From Macrostomum lignano (lineage: Eukaryota): a DNA stretch of 64,000 nt. Under the pieces are notes generated by a model. The model was not told where the DNA came from. It worked only from the letters and a program-made list of their open reading frames with translations, and did no database searches. Made by a program: the position numbers and the translations under genes. Positions 11,703 to 33,490 of the stretch are shown piece after piece. Position 1 is the stretch's first letter. Each line of letters opens with the position of its first letter. The DNA lies in contig NIVC01001567.1 of assembly GCA_002269645.1 (NCBI GenBank), positions 1 to 64,000 on the forward strand, given 5' to 3'.

Positions 11703-12107
11703 TGTCTCAGAGCGGTGGCAGTTGATTATTTTTGCGAGAAATTGACAAGGCCAAGTGCTCACTAAAAATGCTTATATACTCAGCGACAGTAAGCTACACT
11801 GGTTTCAGCTCATGAACTGATAAGGCAAGAACAGTTTTTTCATGTTCTATTTTTAGACTGTCGAAACCTTTCCTCTCACAGTGAGCTGGAGTTGGCTGCG
11901 TACACCCGCCAGTGCACGAATGATGCAAAGTCCGAGTTTTGTCCAAGGCTCTCTCACAGAGTTGATCAAGCTGTTCTGTTCCATTAAAACTCAATTAGAG
12001 AATGCGGGGGGGCATCGGCAAGGATTTTATTGTAGGGGGACAAATCCAAGAATTTCACATGTACATGAATGAATTCCTAGAAGTTCATTATTTTGCGAAT
12101 AGGTGTT

Positions 12108-14949: not shown

Positions 14950-15650
14950 GGGCTTGATGATAGTCTCCGCTGCCGTCGATTTCTGCATCAGATGCACCTC
15001 TGGCCATTTAGAAAAGGCATCGACCAGCAGTGCGTACGTGGATGGATGGATGTGCGTACGTGCCGTTTTTGAGCGGTCCTGCGAAGTCTCTGTAGACTCG
15101 ACTACAGCGGTCGATTTCGTCTGCAGCCAAGACTCCACAGTGAGGTCTTGTGTGGTCCCTCCCTCTGCGGCAACCTGGAGCCAAGGCTGCTCCAACGACG
15201 TTGGTTACGCAGCCACAATTTTCTTGATGATGCTTTCGTGAAACATTCCTATGATTCTTCTGCGCTCCTACAGAGCACACGACACCTCTCGCCAGTTCAG
15301 GGGCCGTGAGTTTTCCAGGGGCGTCGCCAAGATTATTATTTAGAGGTGGGACGGTTTTGAAAAGTAGGCGCCATTCCATTTTAGGAGGCTGCATTTTTTT
15401 AGTTGAAGGGCAGCCTATTTTATTTGAAGTTCGAGATTTTGTTTCACGAGAAGCCATAACTTATTTGACGAGTGAGGATGGCCCCTCCTGGTGATTGCAG
15501 CAGGGCTTTCAGACTTCTAGTATCCGTGCCTTACCAACCCTTCAACTCTTCAAGCATATCGGAAGTGGACCCATTCATTCAAAGTCAAAGGTCGCCAACC
15601 CCAATTCGATAGTTTTGTTTCCGTGTCTCTGATGCACTGAACACAGTTCG
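14950..15650 (-). pseudogene. Degenerate Ty3/Gypsy pol remnant (RNase H end to integrase start)
   Basis: Broken frames give RVYRDFAGPLKNGTY and ALLVDAFSKWPEVHLMQKSTAAET, typical of the Gypsy integrase core start. Multiple frameshifts. Confidence 0.7.
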
Positions 15651-16157
15651 GAAACTGCATGCATAAAAAACGCATGCTACGTGTTGTCTACTGGTCCATT
15701 ATGGTTAAAATAGAGCCGTAATGCTGATAGAATGCTGCTGCTGCTGCTCCAATAAAACAATCCTATTTGCTCCTGCGCACTGCACAAGCAAATACCAGTC
15801 CTGCCTAAACTGAGTACATATCGGAGCAGTTTGTAGGATCTCTGTTGAGTAAACGCCCCAAGCAGCAACATTAAGCAAATAGTGAAATCTAAAAGCTGCA
15901 GTGAGTTCCGAGAAACTTACAATCCGAAAGAAAATAAAAAAAATTGCAGATGATTTTCCAACAGTGGGCAGCATCTACTGCATCCCAGAACACGGAAAGC
16001 CAATCCGCAGCATCTGCAAACAGACCGCTAATGGTCCAGCCCATTAACGACAGGGGTAAAATATGGAAGAAAGCCCCCAAAACTCTCTCAATACTGATAG
16101 CTTTGAGTATTGAAGCCAATACGCTCATATTTTCTCTAATACACAGTAAATGGAAAA

Positions 16158-17183
16158 ATGGTTGCTGCACTGCCGGTAATTCTGTTAGCCTGGACTTCTG
16201 CTGTGGTTTTCGCTGCAGGCTGCAGCAGACGCTGGTGCCAGTACCGGATGCCGCACTGCCTCAACGAGACCTCGGCGCTGACTCGATGGAGCTCGCAAAG
16301 CCTGCAAGCCTGCGTGTTGAAAGCGAGCAGCGAGCCTGACGACCTGGTGCTTGAGTGGAACAAGCAGACAGGTGTGTGCTCGCTCTTCCACTACCAGCAG
16401 GTGTGTCGCACGATGCAGGCAAGCGGTGCCGTCGCGATCGGAGCTGGAGCTGCAGTGCAGCAGTCGCAGTGCTCGGTGTATCGCGCGTTGTCGTTGGCGA
16501 GCTGCGACGCCTCGCTCGACGCTCAGCTGGTGGGCGTGTGGCTGGCAGGTGGGAGCAGCCGGTTCAGCAACCTGGTGTGCCAGAGCGACAGCGGCGGCGG
16601 CGGCGGCAGCCACCGACTGGAGAGCGCGAACCTGCAGTGGACTGAGGAGGGCGCCCGCTTCGACGGGACATCGTCGTACGCGCTGCTCAACGACAGTCGC
16701 TTCGTCTCGAGCGACCCGTCGGCCAGCTTCACTTGGCTAATGAGGCTCAAGAGGCAGCCGAGGCTTCAGCCCTTCATGGAGGCTGTGCCCTGCTCGGATT
16801 TTTCTGCATTCGGACCTCACCTGTGGGAGTTCGATGCGATTGGAAGGTTGTACTTCAGCACCATTAGCACCACTGTTAACCGGCATTTTACGATGCTCTC
16901 TAATTTGAACGCAATTTCTGCCAACGCGAGCACAATGATTGACATCGGAGTCTCCATCGGATCAAGCCAGTCGTTCCATGCCTTCTACCTGAACGGGGAA
17001 TTTATCAGCACTGCTTCAAGCAGACTGAAACGCAGGACTTCGTTCCCGTGCTACATCGTGTCTGTCGGCCGCCGGTTCGGCGAGGGCGGCGCCTTCCTGC
17101 AGGGAGTTGTGCGGGCTGTGGCGATCGCCAACGCCTCGCTGACTGAGCAGCAGATGAGAGACTTCTTCAGCACTGTGCCGTAG
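16158..17183 (+). CDS. Secreted PAN/Apple-like + LamG/pentraxin-like protein, copy 1 (5' type X, 3' type A)
   Basis: Intronless 341 aa with a hydrophobic signal peptide and Cys-rich N-region. LamG-like motifs GARFDGTSSY, SFTWLMRL, FYLNGEF, LQGVVRAVAIANASLT. Four paralogues in the window. Confidence 0.85.
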   Translation: MVAALPVILLAWTSAVVFAAGCSRRWCQYRMPHCLNETSALTRWSSQSLQACVLKASSEPDDLVLEWNKQTGVCSLFHYQQVCRTMQASGAVAIGAGAAVQQSQCSVYRALSLASCDASLDAQLVGVWLAGGSSRFSNLVCQSDSGGGGGSHRLESANLQWTEEGARFDGTSSYALLNDSRFVSSDPSASFTWLMRLKRQPRLQPFMEAVPCSDFSAFGPHLWEFDAIGRLYFSTISTTVNRHFTMLSNLNAISANASTMIDIGVSIGSSQSFHAFYLNGEFISTASSRLKRRTSFPCYIVSVGRRFGEGGAFLQGVVRAVAIANASLTEQQMRDFFSTVP

Positions 17184-17668
17184 ACTTGTAATGACGAATA
17201 TTCTCCCGCTGTCTAAAAGACTTTTTGATAATTTTGTATTTACTGTTTTGGTGTCCAAAAGAAACCTTAGAATTGAAAACATAAAAAGGTTTTTAGACTA
17301 GATGTATCAGTGGGTAATCAAGATTCTTAGCTCCCTGATATTCGTCAGATCACTCTATTTACGCTTGTTTTCAGTGTGCCCCAGCATCGTGAGCGCAGTG
17401 GTATCCGTTTTGTTAACCAAGGGCGTTGCGACCTCATTTTCGAGACCTAAGTGTGTTGTCAAAAGAATTTTGAATATCCGTTTTGCGACTCTACGGACTC
17501 TGCGACTGTGTCCGAAATTCTCTGACTGTCTGTTTAAAGTAGTAAAACACATATTATTACTTCATCTTGTCCCATAATCAAATTTATTGATTCTTATTTC
17601 AGATTTTTCAAGTTTCTATCATTCCCTATTTTAAATTTATGCTTGTTTGTGACTTTTGAGACAGCCCT

Positions 17669-18706
17669 ATGACACCGGCACAAGAGACAATGACAGCGGC
17701 CCTAGAGACAATGACAGCGGCACTAGAGACAATGACACCGGCCGTAGAGACAATGACACCGGCACTAGAGACAATGACACCGGCCCTAGAGACAATGACA
17801 CCGGCCGTAGAGACAATGACACCGGCCCTAGAGACAGTGACACCGGCCCTAGAGACAGTGACACCGGCCCTAGAGACAATGACACCGGCCCTAGAGACAG
17901 TGACACCGGCCCTAGAGACAGTGACACCGGCCCTAGAGACAATGACACCGGCCCTAGAGACAATGACACCGGCCCTAGAGACAATGTCACCGGCCCTAGA
18001 GACAGTGACACCGGCCCTAGAGACAGTGACACCGGCACAAGAGACAATGACAACGGCCCTAGAGACAATGACACCGGCCCTAGAGACAGTGACACCGGCC
18101 CTAGAGACAATAACAGCGACCTTAGTAGTGACAATGACACCGGCACAAGAGACAGTGACACCGGCCCTAGAGACAGTGACACCGGCACAAGAGACAATGA
18201 CACCGGCCCTAGAGACAATGACACCGGCCCTAGAGACAGTGACACCGGCCCTAGAGACAATAACAGCGACCTTAATAGTGACAATGACACCGGCAATAGA
18301 GACAATGACACCGGCCCTAGAGACAGTGACAACGGCCCTAGAGACAATGACACCGGCCCTAGAGACAGTGACACCGGCCCTAGAGACAATGACACCGGCC
18401 CTAGAGACAGTGACACCGGCACAAGAGACAACGACACCGGCACAAGAGACAATGACACCGGCCCTAGAGACAATGACACCGGCCCAAGAGACAATGACAC
18501 CGGCCCTAGAGACAATGACACCGGCCCAAGAGACAATAACAGCGACCTTAATAATGACAATGACACCGGCCCAAGAGACAATAACAGCGACCTTAATAAT
18601 GACAATGACACCGGCCCAAGAGACAATAACAGTGACCTTAATAATGACAATGACACCGGCCCAAGAGACAATAATAGCGACCTTAATAATGACAATGACA
18701 CCGGCG
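17669..18706 (+). repeat. 21-bp minisatellite GACACCGGCCCTAGAGACAAT with a derived 45-bp unit at the 3' end
   Basis: Tandem units. The last four periods add AACAGCGACCTTAATAATGACAAT. Confidence 0.97.
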
Positions 18707-19210
18707 CAATGGCCTGGAGCCTATATATAAATCTGAAAGGTAAAGTGCAGCGATTTTTGCTAGCTGATAAGTTATTGATCTCTTGTGTCTGTTTTTCCAA
18801 CCTGATTTGGTTGAAAAGTCTATTTAATTAAAACCCGAAGTTTCAAAAAAGAAGTTAAACATGTCAAATAGCCAACAACTGATAGGCACGCTTTCATACA
18901 CAAAATTGTTTTCTTGCTTGCTTTGAAAAATTATTCGATTTTGACTCGCTTGTCCAGCGCTTTCTGTCATCGAGATTGCGAGTGTAAAAATATCGAACTA
19001 ATAAACTCTGGAAATTGTTTAGAAATCTTCTATATTTCTGCCAGCCACTTTCACTAAAAAAGTCTAGCATCACAGAAAATGTACAACACTTTTTTGCATT
19101 TTGATTAGTAATTAATTAATCTATCTGTTCGATGAGAGCGAACATCCAGGACCATCCAGAACGCTTTACTGCAGCTTCAAATTGACCTTAAGATACGTTT
19201 TAAACATTGT

Positions 19211-20236
19211 CTACGGCACAGTGCTGAAGAAGTTTCTCATCTGCTGCTCAGTCAGCGAGGCGTTGGCGATGGCCACAGCCCGCACCACTCCCTGCAGGAA
19301 GGCGCCGCCCTCAGCGAACCGGCGGCCAACAGACACGATGTAGCACGGGAACGAAGTCCTGTGTTTCAGTCCGCTTGAAGCAGTGCTGATAAATTCCCCG
19401 TTCAGGTAGAAGGCATGGAACGACTGGCTTGATCCGATGGAGACTCCGATGTCAATCATTGTGCTCGCGTTGGCAGAAATTGCGTTCAAGTTGGAAAACA
19501 TCTCGAAATGCCGGTTAACAGTGGTGCTGATCGTGCTGAAGTACATCCTTCCAATCGCATCGTACTCCCACAGGTGAGGTCCGAATGCAGAAAAATCCGA
19601 GCAGGGCAGAGCCTCCATGAAGGGCTGAAGCCTCGGCTCCCTCCTGAGCCTCATCAGCCACGTGAAGCTGGCCGACGGGTCGCTCGAGACGAAGCGGCTG
19701 TCGTTGAGCAGCGCGTACGACGATGTCCCGTCGAAGCGGGCGCCCTCCTCAGTCCACTGCAGGTTCGCGCTCTCCAGTCGGTGGCTGCCGCCGCCGCCGC
19801 TGTCGCTCTGGCACACCAGGTTGCTGAACCGGCTGCTCCCACCTGCCAGCCACACGCCCACCAGCTGAGCGTCGAGCGAGGCGTCGCAGCTCGCCAACGA
19901 CAACGCGCGATACACCGAGCACTGCGACTGCTGCACTGCAGCTCCAGCTCCGATCGCGACGGCACCGCTTGCCTGCATCGTGCGACACACCTGCTGGTAG
20001 TGGAAGAGCGAGCACACACCTGTCTGCTTGTTCCACTCAAGCACCAGGTCGTCAGGCTCGCTGCTCGCTTTCAACACGCAGGCTTGCAGGCTTTGCGAGC
20101 TCCATCGAGTCAGCGCCGAGGTCTCGTCGAGGCAGTGCGGCATCCGGTACTGGCACCAGCGCCTGCCGCAGCTTGCAGAGGCTCCAATGACTGCACCAAA
20201 AGTCAGAATTACCATCAAGGAAGAGAGCATCATCAT
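19211..20236 (-). CDS. Secreted PAN/Apple-like + LamG-like protein, copy 2 (5' type Y, 3' type A)
   Basis: 341 aa; unique signal peptide MMMLSSLMVILTFGAVIGASAS; core near-identical to copy 1; C-terminus ...FFSTVP. Confidence 0.85.
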   Translation of the reverse strand: MMMLSSLMVILTFGAVIGASASCGRRWCQYRMPHCLDETSALTRWSSQSLQACVLKASSEPDDLVLEWNKQTGVCSLFHYQQVCRTMQASGAVAIGAGAAVQQSQCSVYRALSLASCDASLDAQLVGVWLAGGSSRFSNLVCQSDSGGGGSHRLESANLQWTEEGARFDGTSSYALLNDSRFVSSDPSASFTWLMRLRREPRLQPFMEALPCSDFSAFGPHLWEYDAIGRMYFSTISTTVNRHFEMFSNLNAISANASTMIDIGVSIGSSQSFHAFYLNGEFISTASSGLKHRTSFPCYIVSVGRRFAEGGAFLQGVVRAVAIANASLTEQQMRNFFSTVP

Positions 20237-21627
20237 GGTTTGAGTCTTTGCGATATGCGGGTGAAATGACTTCTTTTATAGAGTTTTCTGCCATTGTAGA
20301 TTTAAAAAAACTTGTGTTCTTCTCGACAATTTTCTACGCTTTTCCAGATCATCTGACAATGTGGGCACCCCACTTCCGTTGGTTGGCTTCTTTTTGCCAT
20401 CAAGGCGGCTGCTTTTTCGTTGTTTTTTTGGAGTTCCGTATGCTTGCGCTTGTATTGCTTTAAGCTCTCGTGCAGACAATGGAATCAATGCAGTCAATTG
20501 AATAAGCTTTTTGTCAGTGATTGTGTGATAAGAAGCCTGTTGCAGTGTTGATGCACAGTTTTTAAACCGGAAGAGTTTCCGTGGCTTCATGGGTGAATCA
20601 GAATCTATTGTTGTTGCGATGCAATTTTTTGCTTCTGTATAATCCATGAATTAAAAGATTGTTTCTTTTTAACTTGTATTGTCTTTTCGGTCTTCTGTCT
20701 TGAAGAACTCCAGCCTTGAGTTCGTTAGCAGCGTAGACACTTCATGATTCGATATTACAAGCACGCTTGAGTCCCGATGCGCGCGCGCTGTGTGAAGATG
20801 AGCAACTTAGATTGATTCATTCGACGAGGTTCAAGAACCTCATCGCTCCATCGTGCTCAGAGACTGTTTCGATCTCATAGATCTCAAATGCTCAAAAATA
20901 GTTGTTACCCCGAGACTTTCCTGCAACTGTAAATTAAAATTACGAATGCGTAAGGATACTCTTTGCCAGCTTACAATCACTCAGCTATTCACAATTTTTT
21001 TCTGGCTACTGATAGTAGACCTGTAAAATGTTTGCCTGACGACGTCATGCAAACTGTGGTTATCGAAAAGTTCTCATTACTAAATTGAATTTTCCAGCTA
21101 AAGTCCGTAAAAGACTTGCCTCTGGAATTTCTTCTGTACCGCTGCGTAAAATGTTTTGGTCATGGAGTAGGAGACGATAATCCTGTATCAATCGTTTCAA
21201 CAAACTGTCATAGGAACTTTCTGGTGCTGCACTGATTTTAAACCGTTTCTGCCATGCTTGCAGCTTTTCTAGTCAAGTAGCACTGCAGGCTAATGTTCAA
21301 AACAGAGTTTAAAAAATTGACGTCACCTTTGCACGTGACTGAGACGTCATATCGCTATCCAACACTCGATGGTAAATACTGTGTAAGCATGTGGCAACTT
21401 TCGTAGAGATCAATTTACCAAGGTGGATTTCCTCTATTTGCTAAAAGATTAATGTAATGAAAATAAATTCTAGTTTCTTTGTAAAATCGACCGAGTAGGA
21501 CTTACCTGTAAAAAATAACGAGAAAAAAAGGAAGCTTATGCTGAAGTAATGTTGTACTTCGCAGGTCAAGAGCCTGGAGCTTTCAATGACCATATAGTTG
21601 TGACACAGTGTGACCTTACTAGGATGA

Positions 21628-21742
21628 TCCACTCAAGCACCAGGTCGTCAGGCTCGCTGCTCGCTTTCAACACGCAGGCTTGCAGGCTTTGCGAGCTCCA
21701 TCGATTCAGCGCCGAGGTCCCATTCAGTCAGTGCGGCATCCG
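21628..21742 (-). pseudogene. Orphan ~115-bp fragment of the shared core of the secreted family
   Basis: Matches the RMPHC...EPDDLVLEW coding segment with several substitutions; flanks are unrelated. Confidence 0.85.
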
Positions 21743-22406
21743 TGCCTTCTTCATTTTGCATCGGTCAGTGTTCTTTTCTAATTATTGTCTTCATTTTTTA
21801 GTCCAAGAAATGGTTACACTTTGCAGATGCTGATTTGCAGCCTCTGGGTTTTCTCCCAGCATGATATTGAGTGCTTGCCCTAAGAGTACCACTGTACAGA
21901 GTCAGCCTCAATCTGGGTAGAATACTCAGGTTGAGATGGGTCTGAGATGGGTCATTACAGCTCATGAGGGAACTCTCATGACACCCATTCTCTCCCTGCT
22001 CATAAGTCTACGAGTATAGAATGAGTGAATTTCCAACGCCTCACGTGAGCGGGTTGGAAGCAAAACAACTTGCCTATTATCTGACTACAACCATGTCTGT
22101 AATGTTGAACAGTAAACATGGCACTCAAGACAGTATGGCTATTACGTAACACACTTTCACTCATCACACTCTTTTCGCACATCTACGAAAGTAAGAAAAA
22201 ATTTACATTTCTCCAAAAATTATTCATGAATAAACAATAGGTTGTTTTAAAAAGTACACCTTAAAGATACATCCTCGATGCAGGAACCAAGAATAAATGT
22301 GCGTCTAAGAGGTCACTAACAAACAATACTAAAAGTTTTAATTAAAATTCTAAGTCACATAAAATTAATTGAGTTTAGATCGACGTCAAGAAAAATAGCT
22401 CCAGCA

Positions 22407-23432
22407 TCAGGCGACGAGTCTGAAGAACTGCTGGATCTCCTCGGCACTCATGGACCTGTTGGCGATGGCAACCGCACGCACAACTCCGCTTAATACACGA
22501 GAAAGAGAGTCCTCAGGTCTCGGCCTGTGACCGATGTACATCCGACAGCAGCGGTTTGGCATGCTGAACGATTTGTCAGCTGAGCTGGTCGGCACAAAGG
22601 ACTCGTTGAAGAACAGCCGAGAAGCCACTCGGGAGCTTCCCAGCACAAAGCCGATATTGATCCAGGCGGAACTCTCGCTAGGCAGCAGGTTTGTGGGGGA
22701 AAAGACGGTGGGCTGCAGACTCCCAACCGGATGAAAATACAGCTGACGGGGCTCGCCAAACTCCCAAAAGTGAGGCCCCATTCGTGGAAAATCATCAAAG
22801 GACGCCGCCTCCATGAAGGGCTGGATCTTCGGCTCCCTCCTGAGCCTCATCAGCCACGTGAAGCTGGCCGACGGGTCGCTCGAGACGAAGCGACTGTCGT
22901 TGAGCAGCGCGTACGACGATGTCCCGTCGAAGCGGGCGCCCTCCTCAGTCCACTGCAGGTTCGCGCTCTCCAGTCGGTGGCTGCCGCCGCCGCCGCTGTC
23001 GCTCTGGCACACCAGGTTGCTGAACCGGCTGCTCCCACCTGCCAGCCACACGCCCACCAGCTGAGCGTCGAGCGAGGCGTCGCAGCTCGCCAACGACAAC
23101 GCGCGATACACCGAGCACTGCGACTGCTGCACTGCAGCTCCAGCTCCGATCGCGACGGCACCGCTTGCCTGCATCGCGCGACACACCTGCTGGTAGTGGA
23201 AGAGCGAGCACACACCTGTCTGCTTGTTCCACTCAAGCACCAGGTCGTCAGGCTCGCTGCTCGCTTTCAACACGCAGGCTTGCAGGCTTTGCGAGCTCCA
23301 TCGAGTCAGCGCCGAGGTCTCGTTGAGGCAGTGCGGCATCCGGTACTGGCACCAGCGTCTGCTGCAGCCTGCAGTCAGAACCGTAGCTACAGAAGTCCAG
23401 GCTAACAGAATTACCGGCAGTGCAGCAACCAT
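22407..23432 (-). CDS. Secreted PAN/Apple-like + LamG-like protein, copy 3 (5' type X, 3' type B)
   Basis: 341 aa; signal peptide MVAALPVILLAWTS as in copy 1; divergent C-terminal half ending ...FFRLVA. Confidence 0.85.
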   Translation of the reverse strand: MVAALPVILLAWTSVATVLTAGCSRRWCQYRMPHCLNETSALTRWSSQSLQACVLKASSEPDDLVLEWNKQTGVCSLFHYQQVCRAMQASGAVAIGAGAAVQQSQCSVYRALSLASCDASLDAQLVGVWLAGGSSRFSNLVCQSDSGGGGSHRLESANLQWTEEGARFDGTSSYALLNDSRFVSSDPSASFTWLMRLRREPKIQPFMEAASFDDFPRMGPHFWEFGEPRQLYFHPVGSLQPTVFSPTNLLPSESSAWINIGFVLGSSRVASRLFFNESFVPTSSADKSFSMPNRCCRMYIGHRPRPEDSLSRVLSGVVRAVAIANRSMSAEEIQQFFRLVA

Positions 23433-24281
23433 TTTTCCACATACTGTGTATTAGAGAAAATACTTGTTTCACGACTCAAAGCTATCAGTACCGAGAGAGT
23501 TTTTCGGCTTTCTTCCATGTTTTATCAGCGGTCTGTTTGCAGACGTTGCGGATTTAGCTCGAGCAATAGTCAGTTTCTCGGAGTCACTGCAGCTTTTAGC
23601 TTTCACTATTTGCTTGATGTTGCTGCTTGGCGCGTTTGCTCAACAGAAGCCAGTTAAGGCAGGACTGGTGTTTGCTTCTGCAATGTGTAGATAGAATCGA
23701 CGCCGACGCTACTTTTATCCTATCAGTATCACGTTCCTATTTTACGGATGATGATGGTCCAGTACGGACCTGACATATAGGATATGTTTTATTCATGTAA
23801 AGATTCGTACCCTCACTGTTCCATGCAATTTCAATGTTAGCCTTGGATTTTTGCAACTATATCTTAACTCTTAAACGAAGTCACTAACGACCGCAGGCTT
23901 TCCCTCTGTCTTCAAGACTCGAAGGGCTAATCCAATCCACAACAGAATTCTGCGCAGTCCATCAGACTCAGCAACAAAACTATCGAATTGGGGTTCGCGT
24001 CTGAGCTCGTTGGTAGGTTGCCTGCAGAGTCAACAGGTCCAGGAGATGCACCAGTGGAGTCTCCAATGGCACAATAGACGGACCAGGCCGGCGTGGCGAC
24101 AGAGTGTCGTTTTGGTGACTTACCTCACTTGTCGGCCATGTTTAAGCTTCTCGGCATTATCAACAAGCAAATGATCACATGAGCAATACTGTAGCAAATG
24201 ACTTTGCCAGCGGCAGGTAACACAAATTCAGAGCACATGCATAAGCGATCTCTTACTAACAGTAGCACGATAAGAATATGA

Positions 24282-24828
24282 CTTGACTTACTTGACTCAG
24301 CTGCAGGGGGCTCCGTGCGTCCGGAAACAGCGAGGAGGCGTTGCCGCCCATTTCGCTAACCCCTGGCGACCACGGGCAGCTAGTGCTGCGGTGTCGCGCA
24401 GGGAGTTCCGGTGGCGCCGGCGTCCGCAGCGCGGTCCCCCTCCGGAGAGTCCAGGAGGTGGATTGTCGCTCGCCCGGTAGCCCTTAGGTAGCGGACGAGC
24501 TGGCAGAGATTCTCGGGCCTGAAAACGTCGGAGAGGTCCGGGTTTGGGCCGAGGTAGGTGAGCCTGTCCTGAGTAAAGGCGGGGCATTCACAGATGAAGT
24601 GCTCCGCATTCTCGACACCGGAGAGGCAGAAAGGGCATTCCTCACTGCGGATTTTCTCCTGGACGTAACGATGCCTGGCAAAGCAGCCATGACCCGAGAG
24701 GGCCATGGTAACCGCCCTGATGTCCCTGCGGTTGAGTCCAAGCAGGGCCCTGCGTAGGGCGGGGGAGGGACAGGGGACAGCCGCGCGGGATTGCCGGCAG
24801 TCGGGGGCGTCAGCCCACCTCTCCCTGT
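24282..24828 (-). mobile_element. 5'-truncated non-LTR retrotransposon (LINE 3' end with CCHC motif) with 14-bp TSD
   Basis: LSGHGCF...ECPFC...[13 protein letters not shown] (C-terminal zinc knuckle); TCAAG-repeat tail; CGATAAGAATATGA at 24268-24281 and 24829-24842. Confidence 0.9.
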
Positions 24829-25209
24829 CGATAAGAATATGAATTAAAACTGTAAAATAGTGGTTACAAAAAGTTGCGAATTGCATAGGATAATAGAACT
24901 TTGAACGAGCTGATGAGAAGGAAAGACCTTGAAACTGATCCAGGACCTAAAAAGGCTTCTTCTGCACTGGCAAAAAGAAGACAGAGAAACTATATAACAG
25001 TCATTGCCCAATGCTAAAAAGCGCTAACTATATGGTAAAGTTACTATTTTAAATCTACAAACTACAATAGTTACTTACTAGCTAGTTAATTTTAAATTTG
25101 AAAAGTACAAAAACTTTTTATTCCATGTTATAAAAGTTTACTTTTTATCTGCTATTTTTAGACGGATTAGTTGGAGTTAACAAGAAAATATACAGTTTTA
25201 TTATAGTGG

Positions 25210-25483
25210 ACTTGACATCTCAGAAATTCTCCCCGTATGCCTTGACATCTCAGAAATTCTCCCCGTAAGCCTTGACATCTCAGAAATTCCCCCCGTAAGC
25301 CTTGACATCTCAGAAATTCTCCCCGTATGCCTTGACATCTCAGAAATTCCCCCGTATGCCTTGACATCTCAGAAATTCTCCCCGTATGCCTTGACATCTC
25401 AGAAATTCCCCCCGTATGCCTTGACATCTCAGAAATTCTCCCCGTATGCCTTGAAATCTCAGAAATTCCCCCGTAAGCCTTGG
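25210..25483 (+). repeat. ~30-bp minisatellite CCTTGACATCTCAGAAATTCTCCCCGTATG
   Basis: About nine units. Confidence 0.95.
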
Positions 25484-25681
25484 CGTATCAACATTTTTGC
25501 ATGCCTACAAGGTAGTCTATATTGCAATAGTTACTTATTAATTAGAAGCGTATTGCCATAGATAGACTAAAGACACACAGTATCCCAATTTACAGGCGTG
25601 GTGTTGAGAGTGAGCTTGGAATCAGCTTTGGAGTCGTGCTACTGACTGCAGTTGGATATGGAACAGATTGTCTGTACTAAA

Positions 25682-25792
25682 GGGCATGCAAAGCCTTGAC
25701 ATCCCATCGCATGAGATGACATCTCATCGCATCTCATCGCATGACATCTTTCGCATGACATCTCATGTCATGCGACAAGCCTTCGCATGCCC
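25682..25792. mobile_element. Small MITE-like element with ~17-bp imperfect TIRs
   Basis: GGGCATGCAAAGCCTTG ... CAAGCCTTCGCATGCCC around internal CATC/CATG repeats. Confidence 0.5.
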
Positions 25793-26187
25793 CAAGGCTT
25801 AAGGCATGCGAATGGTCTAACAAAAATTAGCTTTCTCTAAAAGAAGAGATTAATTGCAATGCTAATGCAATGTAATCAGACAGTAATGGAGTTTAAATTA
25901 TAAAACAGAACGTTCTTGTTCTGCACTTATTGTCAGGTTCTCCAACGAGCAAGTGAACTGAATTGATTAAGTTTTACTGGTACGATCCGTAGTTATCGAA
26001 CCCTTCTCCCGGAATATCTGAACTCACTGTGCGATCACCGTATAAACTCTCCGTGTCGCCCTCTCACCATGCTCTAAATGAGACTGAGATTTTCATGTCG
26101 AAAACTAAAAGTTACTTCTGCATCTTTGGCTACTAATCTTTGAGCGTAAGCTTGACTAAATGCATGTGGAGCTCATGCACTTTAAGA

Positions 26188-26460
26188 GAGGTTGTAGCCT
26201 AGTGGTTAGAGGTTCGGGGGTTCGATTCCCGATCCCTATGGAACAATTTGTGTACTTGAGCAATACATTTAACTTCACAGATTGCTCCACAGGTCACCCA
26301 GCTGTAAAATGGGTGCCAGCATTAGCTGGGGTAATTGTGTGTGGCGACCCCCCCCCCCCCCCAGTCCTTAGACTGAACAGCCGTACGCAGCCTTCAGATA
26401 GCTGCGGCTGAGATATGTCGGTTGCACATCTGGCCTAATTGGGACAGGTGTCATCAATTA
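26188..26460 (+). mobile_element. tRNA-derived SINE, family 1
   Basis: A-box TAGCCTAGTGG, B-box GGTTCGATTCC, then TGTACTTGAGCAA...CACCCAGCTGTAAAATGGGTGCC shared with copies at 55.6 and 62.0 kb. Confidence 0.8.
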
Positions 26461-26739
26461 TTAGCCACTTTAGTAAAAAATTCTAAAATTCTCTCTGCAT
26501 AGAACTGGACTCAACATGAGTTCCTTCAATATTAGATTCCCTTTGGACTTCCGCATTTGCGGCTTTAAATTATCGATAAGATTACTCGTGTGCGAGGACT
26601 GAGGCTTTTAATTGTAAAGAAATGGTTAATGCTTTGATTTGAAAATTATCACACACTAATAGATCAACATATCTGTTCATCAATTCATCATTTTAATCTT
26701 TCTATCTCAAGCCATATAATTTACACTATCAAGAAATTG

Positions 26740-27010
26740 TGAAACAAAGAGAAGTTGCAGACTTCTTCAAAGCAGGAAAATCAGCGTTGGAGTGACTAAA
26801 GCACATGCGGGACATCCAACAGGCTGTGGACAGTGTCCCGAAGTCAAATCTGCCGCGTCTTCAACGGACTTCTGAAAGGCGTGAGAGCTTGCAGAAGACA
26901 CTGTGTTAATATTCAAGACCAGCATTCATAAGATCACTGGTCCATGATCTGCAGCGGAAGCATGTGCCTGCTAGGTTGGTCCCACTCCAGAGCAACGCAC
27001 GACTGCATGT
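26740..27010 (+). pseudogene. Decayed mariner transposase N-terminus (HTH region)
   Basis: KQREVADFFKAGKSALE*...RRESLQK and LVHDLQRKHVPARLVP.PEQR resemble the mariner HTH and WVPxxL linker; contains a stop and deletions. Confidence 0.55.
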
Positions 27011-27529
27011 GTCAGCGAGGAGAAAGGAGCATCTTATGACAACTTCACACAACTTATTACAATGATTCATGTTCCTGCCGGCCTGTGTAACTCTGTTAAC
27101 ATGACATTTTGTTTAAATTCAGCTTTTTTCTCCTAAACAAGTCGTGAGAACCTTCAGGCTAAAATCCTAACTCTTTTTAGAAGCTAATTTCTCATTCAAC
27201 TCGCTGGTCACTCTCTCAGTCACCCCACTCCAAAGTGAAAGTCACTCCCCCAGAAAATTTTATCAATATGGGTAAAGAGACCATTTCGGAATGCAAAACG
27301 GTTCAAACATCGACAGTTTTTATTTGATTTATGATTCAAAAACTGTTGTCGCACAAAAAACGGTTATAAGATGTTATTATCGTGATAGGCCCCTAGTGTT
27401 GTGATAAAAAAAACCAGTCAAACCATATACGAGCTGACTATTAAGACTCAATCCAGTACCAAAGTACTCGTATTAACGAAGCTATTCAAAAGATTTATAC
27501 AGGCGTAAAATTTAATCGGACTTAAAAGT

Positions 27530-28555
27530 CTACGGCAAAGTGCTGAAGAAGTCTCTCATCTGCTGCTCAGTCAGCGAGGCGTTGGCGATGGCCACAGCCC
27601 GCACCACTCCCTGCAGGAAGGCGCCGCCCTCGCTGAACCGGCGACCGACAGACACGATGTAGCACGGGAACAAAGTCCTGTCGTTCGAGCCTGAAGCTGT
27701 GGCGATAAATTCTCCGTTCAGGTAGAAGGCATGGAACGACTGGTTTGATCCGATGGAGACTCCGATGTCAATCATTGTGCTCGCGTTAGCAGAAATTGCG
27801 CTCAAATTAGAGAGCATCGTAAAATGCCGGTTAACAGTGGTGCTAATGGTGCTGAAGTACATCCTTCCAATCGCATCGAACTCCCACAGGTGAGGTCCGA
27901 GTACAGAAAAATCCGAGCAGGGCACAGCCTCCATGAAGGGCTGGACCCTCGGCTCCCTCCTGAGCCTCATCAGCCACGTGAAACTGGCCGACGGGTCGCT
28001 CGAGACGAAGCGACTGTCGTTGAGCAGCGCGTACGACGATGTCCCGTCGAAGCGGGCGCCCTCCTCAGTCCACTGCAGGTTCGCGCTCTCCAGTCGGTGG
28101 CTGCCGCCGCCGCCGCTGTCGCTCTGGCACACCAGGTTGCTGAACCGGCTGCTCCCACCTGCCAGCCACACGCCCATCAGCTGAGCGTCGAGCGAGGCGT
28201 CGCAGCTCGCCAACGACAACGCGCGATACACCGAGCACTGCGACTGCTGCACTGCAGCTCCAGATCCGATCGCGACGGCACCGCTTGCCTGCATCGTGCG
28301 ACACACCTGCTGGTAGTGGAAGAGCGAGCACACACCTGTCTGCTTGTTCCACTCAAGCACCAGGTCGTCAGGCTCGCTGCTCGCTTTCAACACGCAGGCT
28401 TGCAGGCTTTGCGAGCTCCATCGAGTCAGCGCCGAGGTCTCGTTGAGGCAGTGCGGCATCCGGTACTGGCACCAGCGTCTGCTGCAACTCACAGTGGATT
28501 GCGCAACTGCAGCAGCAGCGGCCAAAAGCAAGAAAATGACAGCAAAGATCTGCAT
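27530..28555 (-). CDS. Secreted PAN/Apple-like + LamG-like protein, copy 4 (5' type Z, 3' type A)
   Basis: 341 aa; signal peptide MQIFAVIFLLLAAAAAVAQSTVS; type A C-terminus ...FFSTLP. Confidence 0.85.
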   Translation of the reverse strand: MQIFAVIFLLLAAAAAVAQSTVSCSRRWCQYRMPHCLNETSALTRWSSQSLQACVLKASSEPDDLVLEWNKQTGVCSLFHYQQVCRTMQASGAVAIGSGAAVQQSQCSVYRALSLASCDASLDAQLMGVWLAGGSSRFSNLVCQSDSGGGGSHRLESANLQWTEEGARFDGTSSYALLNDSRFVSSDPSASFTWLMRLRREPRVQPFMEAVPCSDFSVLGPHLWEFDAIGRMYFSTISTTVNRHFTMLSNLSAISANASTMIDIGVSIGSNQSFHAFYLNGEFIATASGSNDRTLFPCYIVSVGRRFSEGGAFLQGVVRAVAIANASLTEQQMRDFFSTLP

Positions 28556-29009
28556 TGCTCTGCTGTGTGGTAGCTCAAGTGTAAGGAAGCAGGAGAAGTC
28601 TGGCTGCTTGCCTCTTCCCTTTTATTCCTTCATATTTTGCTCGGGAGAAAAGAAGCGTGAAGAGGTCTCCAACAGCTACAGTGAGACAATGTGGAAGCTG
28701 CAGATGCTGTTTGCAGTTGTGACACTCCATAGGACTCTTTGCAACAGGTTTTGGCAAGCTGTTGCTATGGCTTTCGCTTCTCAGCCTACTCAATGCAAAT
28801 TTGGCTAAAAGACATGGGGCTTCAGGGCGTTACTTAATGCCCTTTTAACAATCTGTCTTGGGGTTTAACGTTACAGTTATCTACAATTCTTTCACAAACA
28901 ATTCTGCATTGTTAAGTCTCTCAGACAGTACGGTTTGAGCTGTTCGGTTTCCGGGTCTAGGACAGAATTCTGCTGTAATTGAAGTGCCACTAATAAATTG
29001 CTTAATGAG

Positions 29010-29510
29010 ACGATGAGACGTGGAAAGGTGTGCGAAAAAAAGATGAGCGATGAGAGAGGAGACGCGAGGGATGGGATGAGAGAAGAGATAAGAGAGGAGA
29101 TAACAGGAGCGAAGAGGAGAGAGGAGAGAGGGGAAAGAAAAGGACTCTAGAAGAGAGGAGAGGAGAGGAAAGGAGAGGGATTAGGAGGAGAGTGGAGAGA
29201 GGGGTGAGGAGGAAAGTGGAGAGAGAAGAGGAGAGGGGAGAGAATAGGAGAGGAGAGAGAAGAGGAGAAGAGGAGAAGGGAAAGAAGAGGAGAGGGGAGA
29301 GAAGAGGAAAGGGGAGAGAAGAAGAGAGGGGAGAGAAGAGGAGAGGGAGAGAGGGGAGAGAAGAGAGACAGATGAGAGCTAAGAAGAGACACAAACCCTG
29401 AATCGGCCGAATTGCTAATGAAAAATAAAAAATATCAAAGGACCCAAGGGCCGGATAGAGAGTCTTCGCGGGCCACATGTGGCCTTCAGACCGGAGTTTC
29501 CTGACGAACT
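29010..29510 (-). mobile_element. Partial non-autonomous hAT-like element with internal CT/GA low-complexity tract
   Basis: The reverse complement of 29380-29510 aligns to the left end of the 51135-52553 element (GGCCACAxGTGGCCC...TCTATCCGGCCC...GGTTTGTGTCTCT). Confidence 0.7.
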
Positions 29511-29914
29511 AAGCTAACCCAAACCGAAACCCTTGGCGGTTAAATTTGCCATTCATTTTGCCGACAGTCAAAATTTTTGTGTCCGAAGCCAGTTCAATAT
29601 CTTTTGAGCCTGGCAATTGTATGACAGATTGTTGTTCCAAAGTCTATGAGCTTCTCTTGCGTTAATTACTGCTTCAAACTAGGATTATGCCAAGTAAGTG
29701 GAAGCCCGTACTTGGATCTGACATCGGCGTATTGACTGGAAAAAATCGTATGACTCAATGGAGGGCGGCGGTTTTTGCTGCAGAGTGCGATAGCTGGGCG
29801 TTGGCGTTGGCTGCTGGGGCTGTTGCCTCCAGGACCCCGGGTCCTGCACAATATTGCTTGGTGAACTAGCTGTGCAGTATGAGTCTGGTATGGTTTGGTA
29901 TGGTTTGCTTAAGT

Positions 29915-30090
29915 TTGCTACCTAAGGGCTACCGGGCGAGCGACCACCCACCTCCTGGACTTTCTGGAAGGGGAACCGCGCTGCGGACACTGGCACCAGC
30001 TGCCCGTGGTCGCCAGGGGTTAGCGAAATGGGCGGCAACGCCTCCTCGCTGCATCCGGATGCACACGGAGCCCCCTGCAGCTGAGTCAAG
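29915..30090 (+). mobile_element. Short 3'-end copy of the same LINE as 24282-24828
   Basis: GCTACCTAAGGGCTACCGGGCGAGCGAC...CCCCCTGCAGCTGAGTCAAG matches the 3' end of the 24.3-kb copy, with an internal deletion. Confidence 0.85.
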
Positions 30091-31744
30091 CTATGCTCTC
30101 TTTAATTTCTTCATTAATTATTGTTAAAAAATCTCTGGTAGCACACCAGAGAAAGCATAGCTTGACTCTATTGTTGAAGCCATCGCTTACTTTGAAATAG
30201 TGGAGTCCCCTTGCAGAGAGGCCCGTTTAGTTGACGACAGCTAAGCAATCAAAATTTCTTGTCGTCAGACGCGGTACATGCTCTGCGTTTTACATGCAGG
30301 ATATTGCCAAGAATCAAAGAACCCAATATTTTTTTGACATTCTGTAACCGTTCTTTGCCATTCACAGCCTACTTTCCACTTTTGTGAATTCACTGCCGTC
30401 TTGTCAACACTATTGGTGGCAGCTCTTTGGGTGACGATTTCGTAGAGAAGGCGCTTTTGCGAAGCTGTAAGCCTGCCACACAACTCGAGTTCAAACGATA
30501 AAATTTCTTCATCCACTTATTATTTTTTAAACAGTTTGCTTGATGGAAAGGTAACTTGAACTGCTGCAGACGTTTATATAACGCTTCTGCGCTTGAAAAA
30601 CCTTCTAGAAATGGGCTCATTCAGTTGACACAATGTATTGTTTAAAGAGCTTCACAATGATAAGCATGAGAAATTCTATTACTCAGAGTTCGAATACAGT
30701 GATAAGCACTGTAATTTATTTTTAAAACTTTTTTTATTATAAAGTCTGTTAAATTTTAAGGTTAACAAGTAGCTTATTACCGTATTTTAACGCTCCCGTT
30801 TGTTTAAATGAAATTTCACGCTTGTCATAGAAGCTATTGTTTGTACAGAAGCCTAAAATCCGGAACATTCAGATTTAAAACGCACAGCCATTCTTTTTAA
30901 ATTTTAATTGATTTGAGAAACACCGGAACTTTTTGTTGTTAAAAGCACGAGGCGTCCGGTTGCTTGCCCTACGTTTTTATCCTACTTTTTATTTGCTCTG
31001 CAGTAACAAATGCAAATGAAAAGCCTTAGCCATTGCGCTGAAATGCAAGCTAGCAGAATCACTATGCCATTGGAATTTTTGCCAATAGGTTGAGCAGGCA
31101 AGCTGTTGAGCTGCTGCCAGCTTCACAGCTGCATTGTTTCCGTTCCTCATCTTGAGACAATGCAAACGAAGCTGAAGGAGCGAAGGCGGAACGGCCATTG
31201 AGCCGTGGCATTCGTGCTGTTTAAATATGCTGTAATTTTTCAGGTTTATTCAATTTCGTAGGATGCGACGCATGGATAAAGTTCATGCGGATGAACATTC
31301 GGCTGCTCAACATCCAAAAGTGGCCATCACAGAAGATTCCGTCTGTGGTCACCACTTTTGAGAGTGCAGGTAAAGTCTCTCAATCTCTCAATCAAGAAGA
31401 TTTCAGTTGAAGAATGAAGTGGAGGGAGCGATGTGCGAGGGTTGGACGGATTAAAGCTACCTATTACTGCAAAAAGATGTACAACAAGTTATCAGTCGTA
31501 GCTTAGAACACCCAAGTTCACTGGCAATGCTGATAATCAACTTGGGTTGTACAAAAAGTTTTGCAAACTCTCAAAGGGATCTGCGTTAGATTGAAAGTCT
31601 GGCCGCATTACTGACTTTTAGATAACCACGAGAGCCAATTCAACCAAGTGTATTTATTGGTTGTGTAAAACCTGCTGACAACTGATTTTTAAAACAGAAT
31701 CTTTTCCTAAGCATTAATAGCAGCTGCACTGCATGCATCAGCAA

Positions 31745-32773
31745 TCAGGCAACGAGTCTGAAGAACTGCCGGATCTCCTCCGCACTCATGGACCTGTTGG
31801 CGATGGCAACCGCACGCACAACTCCGCTTAATACACGAGAAAGAGAGTCCTCAGGTCTCGGCCTGTGACCGATGTACATCCGACAGCAGCGGTTTGGCAT
31901 GCTGAACGAGTTGTCAACTGAGCTGGTCGGCACAAAGGACTCGTTGAAGAACAGCCGAGAAGCCACTCCGGAGTTGCCAAGCACAAAGCCGATATTGATC
32001 CAGGCGGAACTCTCGCTTGGCAGCAGGTTTGTGGGCGAAATGGCGGTGGGCTGCAGACTCCCCACCGGATGAAAGAACAGCCGGCGGGGCTCGCCAAACT
32101 CCCAGAAGTGGGGCCCGATCTCAGGCACATCATCAAAGGACGCCGCCTCCATGAAGGGCTGGACCCTCGGCTGCCTTTTGAGCCTCATCAGCCACGTGAA
32201 GCTGGCCGACGGGTCGCTCGAGACGAAGCGACTGTCGTTGAGCAGCGCGTACGACGATGTCCCGTCGAAGCGGGCGCCCTCCTCAGTCCACTGCAGGTTC
32301 GCGCTCTCCAGTCGGTGGCTGCCGCCGCCGCCGCTGTCGCTCTGGCACACCAGGTTGCTGAACCGGCTGCTCCCACCTGCCAGCCACACGCCCACCAGCT
32401 GAGCGTCGAGCGAGGCGTCGCAGCTCGCCAACGACAACGCGCGATACACCGAGCACTGCGACTGCTGCACTGCAGCTCCAGCTCCGATCGCGACGGCACC
32501 GCTTGCCTGCATCGTGCGACACACCTGCTGGTAGTGGAAGAGCGAGCACACACCTATCTGCTTGTTCCACTCAAGCACCAGGTCGTCAGGCTCGCTGCTC
32601 GCTTTCAACACGCAGGCTTGCAGGCTTTGCGAGCTCCATCGAGTCAGCGCCGAGGTCTCGTTGAGGCAGTGCGGCATCCGGTACTGGCACCAGCGTCTGC
32701 TGCAACTCACAGTGGATTGCGCAACTGCAGCGGCAGCGTTCAAAAGCAAGAAAATGACAGCAAAGATCTGCAT
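31745..32773 (-). CDS. Secreted PAN/Apple-like + LamG-like protein, copy 5 (5' type Z, 3' type B)
   Basis: 342 aa; signal peptide as in copy 4; C-terminal half as in copy 3 (...FFRLVA). Confidence 0.85.
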   Translation of the reverse strand: MQIFAVIFLLLNAAAAVAQSTVSCSRRWCQYRMPHCLNETSALTRWSSQSLQACVLKASSEPDDLVLEWNKQIGVCSLFHYQQVCRTMQASGAVAIGAGAAVQQSQCSVYRALSLASCDASLDAQLVGVWLAGGSSRFSNLVCQSDSGGGGSHRLESANLQWTEEGARFDGTSSYALLNDSRFVSSDPSASFTWLMRLKRQPRVQPFMEAASFDDVPEIGPHFWEFGEPRRLFFHPVGSLQPTAISPTNLLPSESSAWINIGFVLGNSGVASRLFFNESFVPTSSVDNSFSMPNRCCRMYIGHRPRPEDSLSRVLSGVVRAVAIANRSMSAEEIRQFFRLVA

Positions 32774-33490
32774 TGCTCAGCTGTGTGTCACAGAAGTGTA
32801 AGGAAGCAGGAGACGTCTGGCTGCTTGCCCGTGCCACGTTCCATGCTACTTTATATTTGCTCAGTAACGCATAGGCAGGATTCATTTTCAGATGTTGCTA
32901 TGCAATCCAAGCTTTAGGGGGGGGGGGTCTATCACCGGTGGGTTTCCGTTTCCTTATCCGTGACAATGCAAGCGACGCTGAAAGCGTGAAGTCTGCAGAC
33001 AAGCCATAGAATTTGTGCTGCATAATTTTTTGTTTAGCCCCGGGCCGTGTTGTATGTTGGGCTTTAGACTGACTTACAGTCAATAATTTTTAGTAATATT
33101 CATCCATAGCGTGCGACGCATGGATAGCGTTCATGGGAGATCTGATGCATGGATGAACCTCTAGCTGCATTATTTGCAGTATGCTATGTGCATAGAGCTG
33201 GCGGTTGGCTCAGTGTGCTGCTTTCAGTCCGCAATTTCTGCGCCTGAATGGCTGTGAAGTGGCAGTTTGGATGACAGTATATTGAGATAAGCAAAACCTC
33301 TGGTGATCGAACTAGTGCGCCTGAGCTTCTATAGCTGTTCCATATAATATTGTCGTGTACAGAGCCCACGATACTACTTATTAAAGTAGATTGCTGAGCG
33401 AGTAATCATGATTACCCTTCGTGGAATAGATGTGGAATATTGTAGATAGCATTTTTTATTTTGACAATTATAATGAACATTTCGATAACA

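Follow-up and report, generated by a model that had tools for sequence, protein, structure and literature searches.

A lectin-like gene array of Macrostomum lignano with a near-identical core and exchanged 5' and 3' modules points to segmental concerted evolution

Segmental concerted evolution by interlocus gene conversion is known from MHC, KIR, opsin and globin genes and from plant R-gene clusters. In programmed cassette systems, of which trypanosome VSG, Borrelia vlsE and lamprey VLR are examples, copying driven by homology links diverged cassettes to a constant region; these systems have one expression site and silent, incomplete donors, and they act in infection or in somatic cells. Here, we describe an array of five single-exon genes for putative secreted, lectin-like proteins in the flatworm Macrostomum lignano, in which a near-identical core of about 560 bp is joined to alternative 5' and 3' modules. 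The DNA analyzed, referred to below as the window, comprises positions 1 to 64,000 (64,000 nucleotides) of contig NIVC01001567.1 of assembly GCA_002269645.1.

As in the known cases of segmental concerted evolution, one segment of the array genes is homogenized while its neighbors are divergent, the trees of different segments disagree, the GC content at third codon positions (GC3) is raised, and chimeric paralogs are present. In contrast to those cases, the boundary of the homogenized segment is unusually sharp, it falls within one beta-sandwich domain, in a gene that lacks introns, and homology ends at the stop codon. The mechanism that we favor for the array is the well-known one of segmental concerted evolution with chimeric paralogs; it is the lectin-like family itself that is undescribed, and we found no paper on such a family in Macrostomum. 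The array resembles the VSG, vlsE and VLR systems in the joining of diverged cassettes to a constant region by homology. However, each of the five copies is a complete gene with its own ATG, signal-peptide region and stop codon, so the array is not a programmed cassette system, and a tblastn search of the window found neither silent donor cassettes nor further module copies except for one 118-bp relic of the core.

Among animals, the nearest described architecture appears to be that of the SpTransformer (Sp185/333) genes, which form immune gene clusters in the purple sea urchin (PMC8634487, PMC5491942, PMC10887614). The likeness lies in small, tightly clustered genes for secreted proteins, mosaic blocks, intergenic tandem repeats and phylogenies blurred by recombination. 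No sequence or fold relationship between the two families is apparent, and SpTransformer (SpTrf) variation consists of the presence or absence of 25-27 exon 2 elements, whereas the array uses two or three alternative end modules. In addition, tandem repeats are not specific to the array in M. lignano; they are a feature of the genome at large, abundant throughout the window (41 rows of Tandem Repeats Finder output) and are not enriched around the genes, covering, by a rough sum, ~11% of the array and ~26% of the remaining window. No SpTrf-named proteins turned up among the homologs found by our profile search, and no direct comparison with SpTrf was made.

The ORF listing of the window contains five uninterrupted single-exon open reading frames (ORFs) of 341-342 amino acids (aa) in one local array. 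All five are intact and could be aligned with one another. They are given here with their combination of 5' module (X, Y or Z) and 3' module (A or B):

16158..17183, plus strand: gene c1, 341 aa, X-A; Laminin_G_3 match at E=0.0067; the copy used for structure prediction
19211..20236, minus strand: gene c2, 341 aa, Y-A; intact counterpart on NIVC01001298.1
22407..23432, minus strand: gene c3, 341 aa, X-B
27530..28555, minus strand: gene c4, 341 aa, Z-A
31745..32773, minus strand: gene c5, 342 aa, Z-B

When each gene with 2.5-kb flanks was used as a BLAST query against the window, homology between paralogs stopped 2-10 nt past the stop codon and, upstream of the ATG, at 57 nt for type Z or at 101 nt plus further patches for type X. 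Apart from these X and Z upstream stubs, BLAST found no intergenic paralogy in the array. We also observed a 21-nt minisatellite of ~47 copies (window 17669-18672) in the interval that separates c1 from c2, which lie tail to tail; several reading frames on each strand run through it without a stop, giving "ORFs" of 353-391 aa that are not genes.

The constant core occupies codons ~22-209, which encode a Cys-rich N-terminal domain and the first ~40 residues of a LamG-like domain. Its copies and its relic, with extents from BLAST and, for the five full copies, a table of variable sites and GC3 values, are as follows:

16221..16783, plus strand: core copy 1 (GC3 0.84)
19611..20170, minus strand: core copy 2
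22807..23366, minus strand: core copy 3
27927..28486, minus strand: core copy 4
32145..32704, minus strand: core copy 5
21625..21742, minus strand: core relic of 118 bp, codons ~30-68, ~95% identical, without ORF context

A preliminary description of this DNA, made by reading the letters, had proposed five intronless genes with a ~560-bp core differing at only a few positions, synonymous sites included. BLAST returned the same five sets of core coordinates, with pairwise identities of 98.2-98.9% when the edges are included. In the codon alignment, the only differences among the five copies at codons 39-181 are 4 singleton substitutions and one GGC indel, and there are zero parsimony-informative sites between alignment nt 70 and 598. 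From the core to a module, identity falls from about 99.5% to saturation within ~30 nt. Synonymous divergence (dS, by the method of Nei and Gojobori, used here for all dS and dN/dS estimates) is 0.008-0.034 in the core, compared to 0.08-0.16 in C-terminal modules of the same type, and is saturated between A and B and among X, Y and Z; for pooled synonymous differences, the contrast between the core and same-type C-terminal modules is significant (Fisher's test, p=5e-8). GC3 likewise differs along the gene, with values of 0.84-0.86 in the core, 0.65-0.71 in the C-terminal modules and 0.41-0.55 in the signal region (p=8e-4), while the GC content of the flanks is roughly 0.25-0.55. The high GC3 of the core would fit long-term GC-biased conversion, with selection on codon usage as an alternative.

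Downstream of codon ~210, the genes fall into two types that extend to the stop codon, A (c1, c2 and c4) and B (c3 and c5), delimited by BLAST, dS and the alignment and, for B, also by identity to other subfamilies:

16784..17191, plus strand: 3' module A of c1, the last ~132 aa of the LamG-like domain
19209..19610, minus strand: 3' module A of c2, 4.0% different from its counterpart on NIVC01001298.1, compared to 0.8% in the flanks
27522..27926, minus strand: 3' module A of c4
22402..22806, minus strand: 3' module B of c3
31739..32144, minus strand: 3' module B of c5

The two types share 33% of their amino acids and, in the middle of the module, ~46% of their nucleotides. The boundary between core and module, at residue ~209, lies about 40 residues inside the LamG-like domain of ~165 residues, and A and B are therefore alternative versions of three quarters of one fold, packing on constant strands, and not separate domains. 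The two 3' types of the preliminary description are real, while its notion of a separate ligand-binding module does not match a boundary inside the fold. In other M. lignano subfamilies, C-terminal modules are 25-32% identical to A or B and cores are 42-50% identical to the array core. Since A and B are as distant from each other as these subfamilies are, the core shared by all five genes is secondary and much younger than the split between A and B. Within types, dN/dS is 0.26-0.69 and never exceeds 1, values that would indicate constraint, without detectable diversifying selection.

Three further features of the 3' region were considered and set aside. The conserved block GVVRAVAIAN was ruled out as a second, 3' recombination anchor, as A and B differ there synonymously. 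The sequence R-L-K-R at the boundary between core and variable region was a candidate convertase site and was rejected, on our reading, because the structural model places it in a jelly-roll beta-strand predicted with confidence. Finally, c2 and c4 each carry B-like bases at 4 sites of their A module, a number within chance, given a rough expectation of one third of the private differences.

At the other end of the genes, three types with no relationship to one another can be told apart in the first ~22 codons together with the proximal upstream DNA, namely X (c1 and c3), Y (c2) and Z (c4 and c5):

16057..16220, plus strand: 5' module X of c1, comprising 101 upstream nt and the signal peptide, with further patches at 15841-15923 and 15593-15639
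23367..23524, minus strand: 5' module X of c3, with further patches at 23566-23647 and 23955-23999 (BLAST, Smith-Waterman, alignment)
20171..20236, minus strand: 5' module Y of c2, signal peptide; the upstream DNA is unlike that of every other copy
28487..28612, minus strand: 5' stretch of c4 (type Z), 92.8% identical between c4 and c5; upstream Smith-Waterman z=16.7
32705..32829, minus strand: 5' stretch of c5 (type Z), by BLAST, upstream Smith-Waterman and the c4/c5 alignment

The X modules of c1 and c3 are 82% identical over positions -101 to +63, with mismatches concentrated in the final ~20 nt of the signal-peptide sequence; without these, identity is ~88-90% by eye. X homology continues in patches out to about -560 (upstream Smith-Waterman z=33). 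The Z modules of c4 and c5 are 93% identical over positions -57 to +69. Each of the three types encodes a hydrophobic stretch of ~20 residues that closes with small residues directly ahead of the first Cys, and the five proteins would be secreted by means of this putative signal peptide.

Because X-A, X-B, Z-A and Z-B all occur, in addition to Y-A, the preliminary description had held that no simple duplication tree can produce all four, and formal tests gave the same answer. Between nt 633 and 1038, 166 sites support the split of c1, c2 and c4 from c3 and c5, while between nt 4 and 69, 11 sites support c1 and c3 against the rest and 5 support c4 and c5 against the rest. These 166 and 16 site patterns are mutually incompatible by the four-gamete test, and the pairwise homoplasy index (PHI) permutation test gave p=0.0005; the formal minimum number of recombination events, Rm, is 10, a value inflated by saturated sites in the signal region. 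As the 5' and 3' splits are incompatible, at least two exchanges ending in the core or at its edge are required. In the transition zone, codons 200 and 202 join c1 with c5, codon 205 joins c1 with c2 and c4 with c5, and the A/B split holds from codon 211 on, a conflict that would mark a further breakpoint. Within-type modules are 5-12% diverged and the core ~0.5%, showing that reassortment is older and rarer than homogenization of the core.

We also compared the window with a second copy of the locus. Contig NIVC01001298.1 of the same assembly, which carries BOX15_Mlig031297g1, aligns to window 10.8-20.9 kb, with ~0.6-2.7% substitutions in unique sequence; the two copies also differ by indels and in the length of minisatellites. 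The genome of M. lignano is neopolyploid, its three subgenomes being 1.4-2.4% apart in single-nucleotide polymorphisms, or 32-36% apart when long indels are counted, and 93% of its read pairs are multi-mapping (PMC10733133). Given subgenomes at this divergence, NIVC01001298.1 is most likely a homeologous copy or another haplotype. It contains the same tail-to-tail pair of X-A and Y-A genes with the minisatellite, here longer, between them. The c2 counterpart (NIVC01001298.1, 1141-2166) is intact. The c1 counterpart (4400-5142) has a frameshift and a 284-bp deletion, equal to window 16687-16970, which removes the junction of core and C-terminal module; either one c1 homeolog or haplotype is a pseudogene, or NIVC01001298.1 holds an assembly error.

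Between the two copies of c2, the C-terminal module differs at 16 of 397 sites (4.0%), compared to 8 of 1001 (0.8%) in the flanks (p=1e-4) and 7 of 560 in the core. Over the whole gene, 10 of the 24 differing sites equal the base of a paralog: that of c4 at nt 24, 376, 650 and 652, of c4 and the c1 counterpart on NIVC01001298.1 at nt 884, of c1, alone or with that counterpart, at nt 576 and 951, and of c1 and c4 at nt 628, 708 and 1003. We read these patches as probable recent, short conversion tracts from paralogs. Immediately upstream of c2, a 123-aa ORF (20276-20647, minus strand) is identical in amino acid sequence on NIVC01001298.1 (730-1101), and the 641 bp around it differ at 4 positions, making this the least diverged stretch compared.

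Divergence of the core between homeologs is 0.2-1.3%, compared to 0.6-2.7% in neutral flanks, in a comparison of two locus copies whose cores carry only singletons. Divergence of the core among paralogs (~0.3-1.3%) is not above that between the two locus copies, so homogenization of the core is about as recent as the subgenome split. Gap columns make up 2-10% of the alignment of the window with NIVC01001298.1 at ~1% divergence. We found no exact-protein matches to c1, c3, c5 or the protein P0020 in public assemblies, and X-B, Z-A and Z-B are therefore without independent contig support.

The label LamG-like in the preliminary description agrees with both profile and structure searches. The Pfam family Laminin_G_3 (PF13385) matches the five proteins at 15.6-18.5 bits (E=0.002-0.02), under the gathering cut-off of 27.6 bits, over profile positions 1-151 and residues ~169-334. 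It reaches E<=0.1 in 12 of 25 family members (best 1.2e-5), one homolog from the Joint Genome Institute (JGI) has a precomputed weak match, and the family has a C-terminal motif, G-x-[VI]-x-x-V-x-I-x-N-x-x-[ML]-[ST]-x-x-E-[IM]. An AlphaFold2 (AF2) model of c1 from an alignment of 25 sequences has a predicted local distance difference test score (pLDDT) of 77.5 and a predicted template modeling score (pTM) of 0.73; it supersedes a model from the five window proteins alone, which was unusable (pLDDT 30). A Foldseek search of the PDB with this model returned 272 matches at E<=1e-3, the top ones at E~1e-7 with probability 1.0 over ~200 columns and 9-18% sequence identity, led by the lectin-like domain of Trypanosoma cruzi trans-sialidase, the Hcn domain of botulinum neurotoxin (BoNT) and of its nontoxic partner NTNH, and PAPP-A2. 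This strong fold match, despite the sub-threshold Pfam scores, supports the prediction that the C-terminal region is a Laminin_G_3/ConA-like jelly roll, which may bind a ligand, probably a glycan. The predicted jelly roll aligns with those of known Laminin_G_3 proteins (T. cruzi trans-sialidase, clostridial neurotoxin/NTNH Hcn and PAPP-A), and the Pfam matches, weak as they are, consistently cover the whole domain; in the array proteins, in contrast, the LamG-like domain is preceded by a small Cys-rich domain and has no other partner in a putative secreted protein of ~320 aa.

The N-terminal domain comprises ~90 residues with conserved cysteines, and the model contains a compact alpha/beta unit at residues ~25-90 (pLDDT 84-92) in the predicted order strand-strand-helix-strand-strand-helix. 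This domain had been called PAN-like, a label that our searches do not support: the PAN/Apple hidden Markov models (HMMs) gave no match at E<=10 to the isolated N-terminal domains of five family members, nor in scans of the full-length proteins. The Foldseek matches listed for the full model are dominated by the jelly roll, the N-terminal domain having been searched only within the whole model.

A PDB sequence search with the window proteins gave nothing meaningful. An exhaustive profile search of 1.8 billion representative sequences found 64 proteins at E<=1e-3, 23 of them at E<=1e-10. Gene models of M. lignano score best, many of them chimeras under a wrong name, and the others come from ~1-kb JGI metagenome contigs. 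The family appears to be confined to macrostomid-like flatworms and is unannotated. The sole match in a word-indexed protein search was P0001, a chimeric G-protein-coupled receptor gene model (UniRef, M. lignano, 576 aa). In P0001, 33 residues that are 97% identical to the core are followed by apparently frame-shifted core sequence, and the model either reflects another genomic core fragment or is mis-joined.

The combination of a constant core with variable C-terminal modules recurs in a second organism. A single-protein scan of metagenome contigs returned one locus. Eight contigs with homologs (L001-L008) are from JGI samples 3300040776, 3300040777 and 3300040801 and from Ga0193976. Their proteins are ~30% identical to those of the window, and the genes are also single-exon. 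Among the blocks that are codon-identical between them are the signal peptide, 46 codons within the N-terminal domain and the part where the jelly roll begins, whereas the C-terminal modules, of which at least 8 are distinct, are saturated at 42-58% nucleotide identity. There are mosaic switches between block variants, with variable blocks in the N-terminal domain, and in 8 of 8 contigs the constant part has the higher GC3; these are short-read contigs, which can be chimeric across exact repeats. Several of them start inside the constant block, as expected of short-read assemblers, which break at exact repeats. At the 3' ends of L003, L006, L007 and L008, we also saw short tandem duplications or minisatellites, which in L006 take in the last codons of the gene; they may be assembly loop artifacts or real minisatellites such as those in M. 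lignano.

Within M. lignano, the members of another subfamily (P0003 and P0006) share with each other an identical core, which ends at the same position, L-L-R-M-K-R-Q-P, and differ in their N-terminal parts. P0003 itself consists of two tandem units of N-terminal domain and core, both ending in L-L-R-M-K-R-Q-P, without a C-terminal module. Since it recurs both in the metagenome contigs and in P0003/P0006, the design of a constant scaffold with a variable C-terminal module is a property of the family and not of one assembly. The diversity of C-terminal modules, which is seen again in the second organism, suggests that the proteins recognize variable targets; to assign them a role in immunity or as effectors would be speculation.

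We think it probable that the array evolves by segmental concerted evolution of five old tandem paralogs, through conversion confined to the core together with rare exchanges that have a breakpoint in the core. Non-allelic gene conversion, occasionally with crossover or template switching, would repeatedly hit the ~560-bp core, the only part similar enough among all copies to pair, and would make it near-identical, also at synonymous sites, while driving up its GC3. The X/Y/Z and A/B modules would lie beyond the homology boundary and diverge as long-separate subfamilies do, and rare exchanges with one end in the core would join one 5' module to different 3' modules and vice versa. Most simply, the mosaic is a by-product of recombination in the array and not a dedicated shuffling device. 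Recombination through the core, as put forward in the preliminary description, is upheld by the requirement for breakpoints inside it and by its homogenization at synonymous sites.

Several points weigh against this explanation. Gene conversion as the homogenizing process is something that we infer from patterns in the sequence. Homology is cut off 2-10 nt past the stop codon even between near-identical modules of the same type, which are 93-98% identical through the last codon (96-99% over the last 100 nt), and the 400 nt downstream have no similarity in any pair (Smith-Waterman z<=1.6); two-ended conversion should fade toward the homology edge, and unequal crossover or segmental duplication should carry flanks along. 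The extreme turnover of indels known for this genome (PMC10733133) may have removed the flanks, with the ORFs preserved by selection, and the patchy region upstream of the X genes looks like an intermediate stage of such erosion. Moreover, polishing of repeats with short reads could exaggerate the identity of the core, the use of all five copies is predicted from their ORFs, and the cross-check with an independent contig covers 2 of the 5 genes.

It is also conceivable, if unlikely, that the core has been kept by selection as a recombination substrate and that shuffling across it, in the germline or at the level of populations, continually pairs promoter/signal modules anew with diverged binding modules and so makes a diversity-generating repertoire for immunity, mating or secreted effectors. 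All four pairings of X or Z with A or B and the extra breakpoints of the transition zone would be expected of such a repertoire, as would the eight or more C-terminal modules on one scaffold and the variable N-terminal-domain blocks of the second organism, the paralog-derived patches, which raise allelic or homeologous diversity of the C-terminal module, and the likeness to SpTransformer clusters (PMC8634487). However, the divergence of modules (5-12%) relative to cores (~0.5%) means that swaps are old and few, the same combinations are present for c1 and c2 on NIVC01001298.1, and within-type dN/dS values carry no sign of diversifying selection. In addition, there are just three by two module types, and swapping signal peptides has no obvious benefit. 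For these reasons, we do not follow the preliminary description in seeing the core as a hub selected for reassortment. Similarly doubtful is the more specific idea of a hyperdiverse macrostomid repertoire, with the core as a DNA-identical pairing scaffold for germline shuffling of half-domain binding modules and promoter/signal modules, possibly in immunity or sexual conflict; if true, such a germline-shuffled repertoire would parallel, in flatworms, the diversification of SpTransformer, FREP or R genes.

An RNA- or template-switch-mediated copying process, in which genes would be grafted from processed transcripts or by replication switching and chimeras would arise by a switch inside the core, seems to us improbable. 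It would explain why the genes are single-exon in both organisms, why homology reaches no farther than 2-10 nt past the stop codon and 57-101 nt upstream of the ATG without intergenic paralogy, and why there is an isolated 118-bp core relic. In contrast, no poly(A) relics or target-site duplications follow the stop codons, the extent of homology leaves no space for a normal 3' untranslated region (UTR), the X patches reach ~560 bp upstream, past a plausible 5' UTR, and the copies are in one local array rather than dispersed.

We give very little weight to an assembly or polishing artifact, whether as chimeras joined through the core or as identity imposed by multi-mapping consensus polishing. 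A neopolyploid genome whose three subgenomes are ~2% apart, and in which 93% of the read pairs are multi-mapping (PMC10733133), invites such errors, and an identical core is a classic collapse point, at which short-read metagenome contigs do break. Nevertheless, 560 bp is far shorter than the long reads behind the M. lignano assemblies, and NIVC01001298.1 repeats the X-A and Y-A genes, their tail-to-tail order and the minisatellite between them. The cores also retain private singletons, so they have not been flattened by polishing, and each copy is an intact ORF of coherent type up to its stop codon.

Least credible of all is that nucleotide-level selection (on an antisense gene, RNA structure or regulatory element) and not conversion keeps the core identical, since the antisense ORFs of 224-282 aa that span every core copy are a by-product of codon usage (the frame stays open in 1000 of 1000 synonymous-codon shuffles, and we rejected these and other alternative-frame ORFs as genes), the low divergence of the core between homeologs (0.2-1.3%) is no sign of extra constraint next to neutral flanks at 0.6-2.7%, and such selection cannot account for incongruent 5' and 3' trees.

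Read as segmental concerted evolution, the array is a very clean natural case of conversion of part of a gene, with a 560-bp tract abutting subfamily-level divergence in one fold and no introns. It is noteworthy that the boundary is so sharp and lies within a fold, that homology is limited to the ORF and that the second organism has many C-terminal modules. The array could be used to measure how far conversion tracts extend, how strongly conversion is GC-biased and what becomes of paralogs in a young polyploid. The analysis also draws attention to a family of putative secreted, lectin-like proteins, unannotated and lineage-restricted, in a flatworm that serves as a laboratory model. If its expression is immune or reproductive, this family would offer a tractable system, since transgenesis is available in the animal.

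We also noted other features of the window. A pair of inverted fragments, ~89-91% identical, lies at 24291-24492 and 29917-30090, ~3 kb to either side of c4. The first overlaps a 168-aa ORF (24380-24886) without a Pfam match, which may resemble the C terminus of a non-long-terminal-repeat (non-LTR) retrotransposon ORF2. Between c4 and c5, GA/purine-rich short tandem repeats (29054-29389) are 73-79% like a 1.1-kb array of 25-nt units at 51163-52450, ~22 kb downstream. Upstream of the array, positions 2844-8237 (plus strand) contain an intact Helitron RepHel ORF of 1797 aa (Helitron_like_N, 8.7e-30; PIF1, 5.9e-27; DUF6570), directly followed by a 1.6-kb satellite array of 15/34/49-nt units (8251-9827). 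This Helitron, 8 kb from the genes, may have been recently active; we found no link between it and the gene array. An exon-like ORF at 11025-11762 (minus strand) encodes a biotin-protein-ligase N-terminal domain (BPL_N, 1.3e-38) and is 99% identical to M. lignano BOX15_Mlig031297g1.

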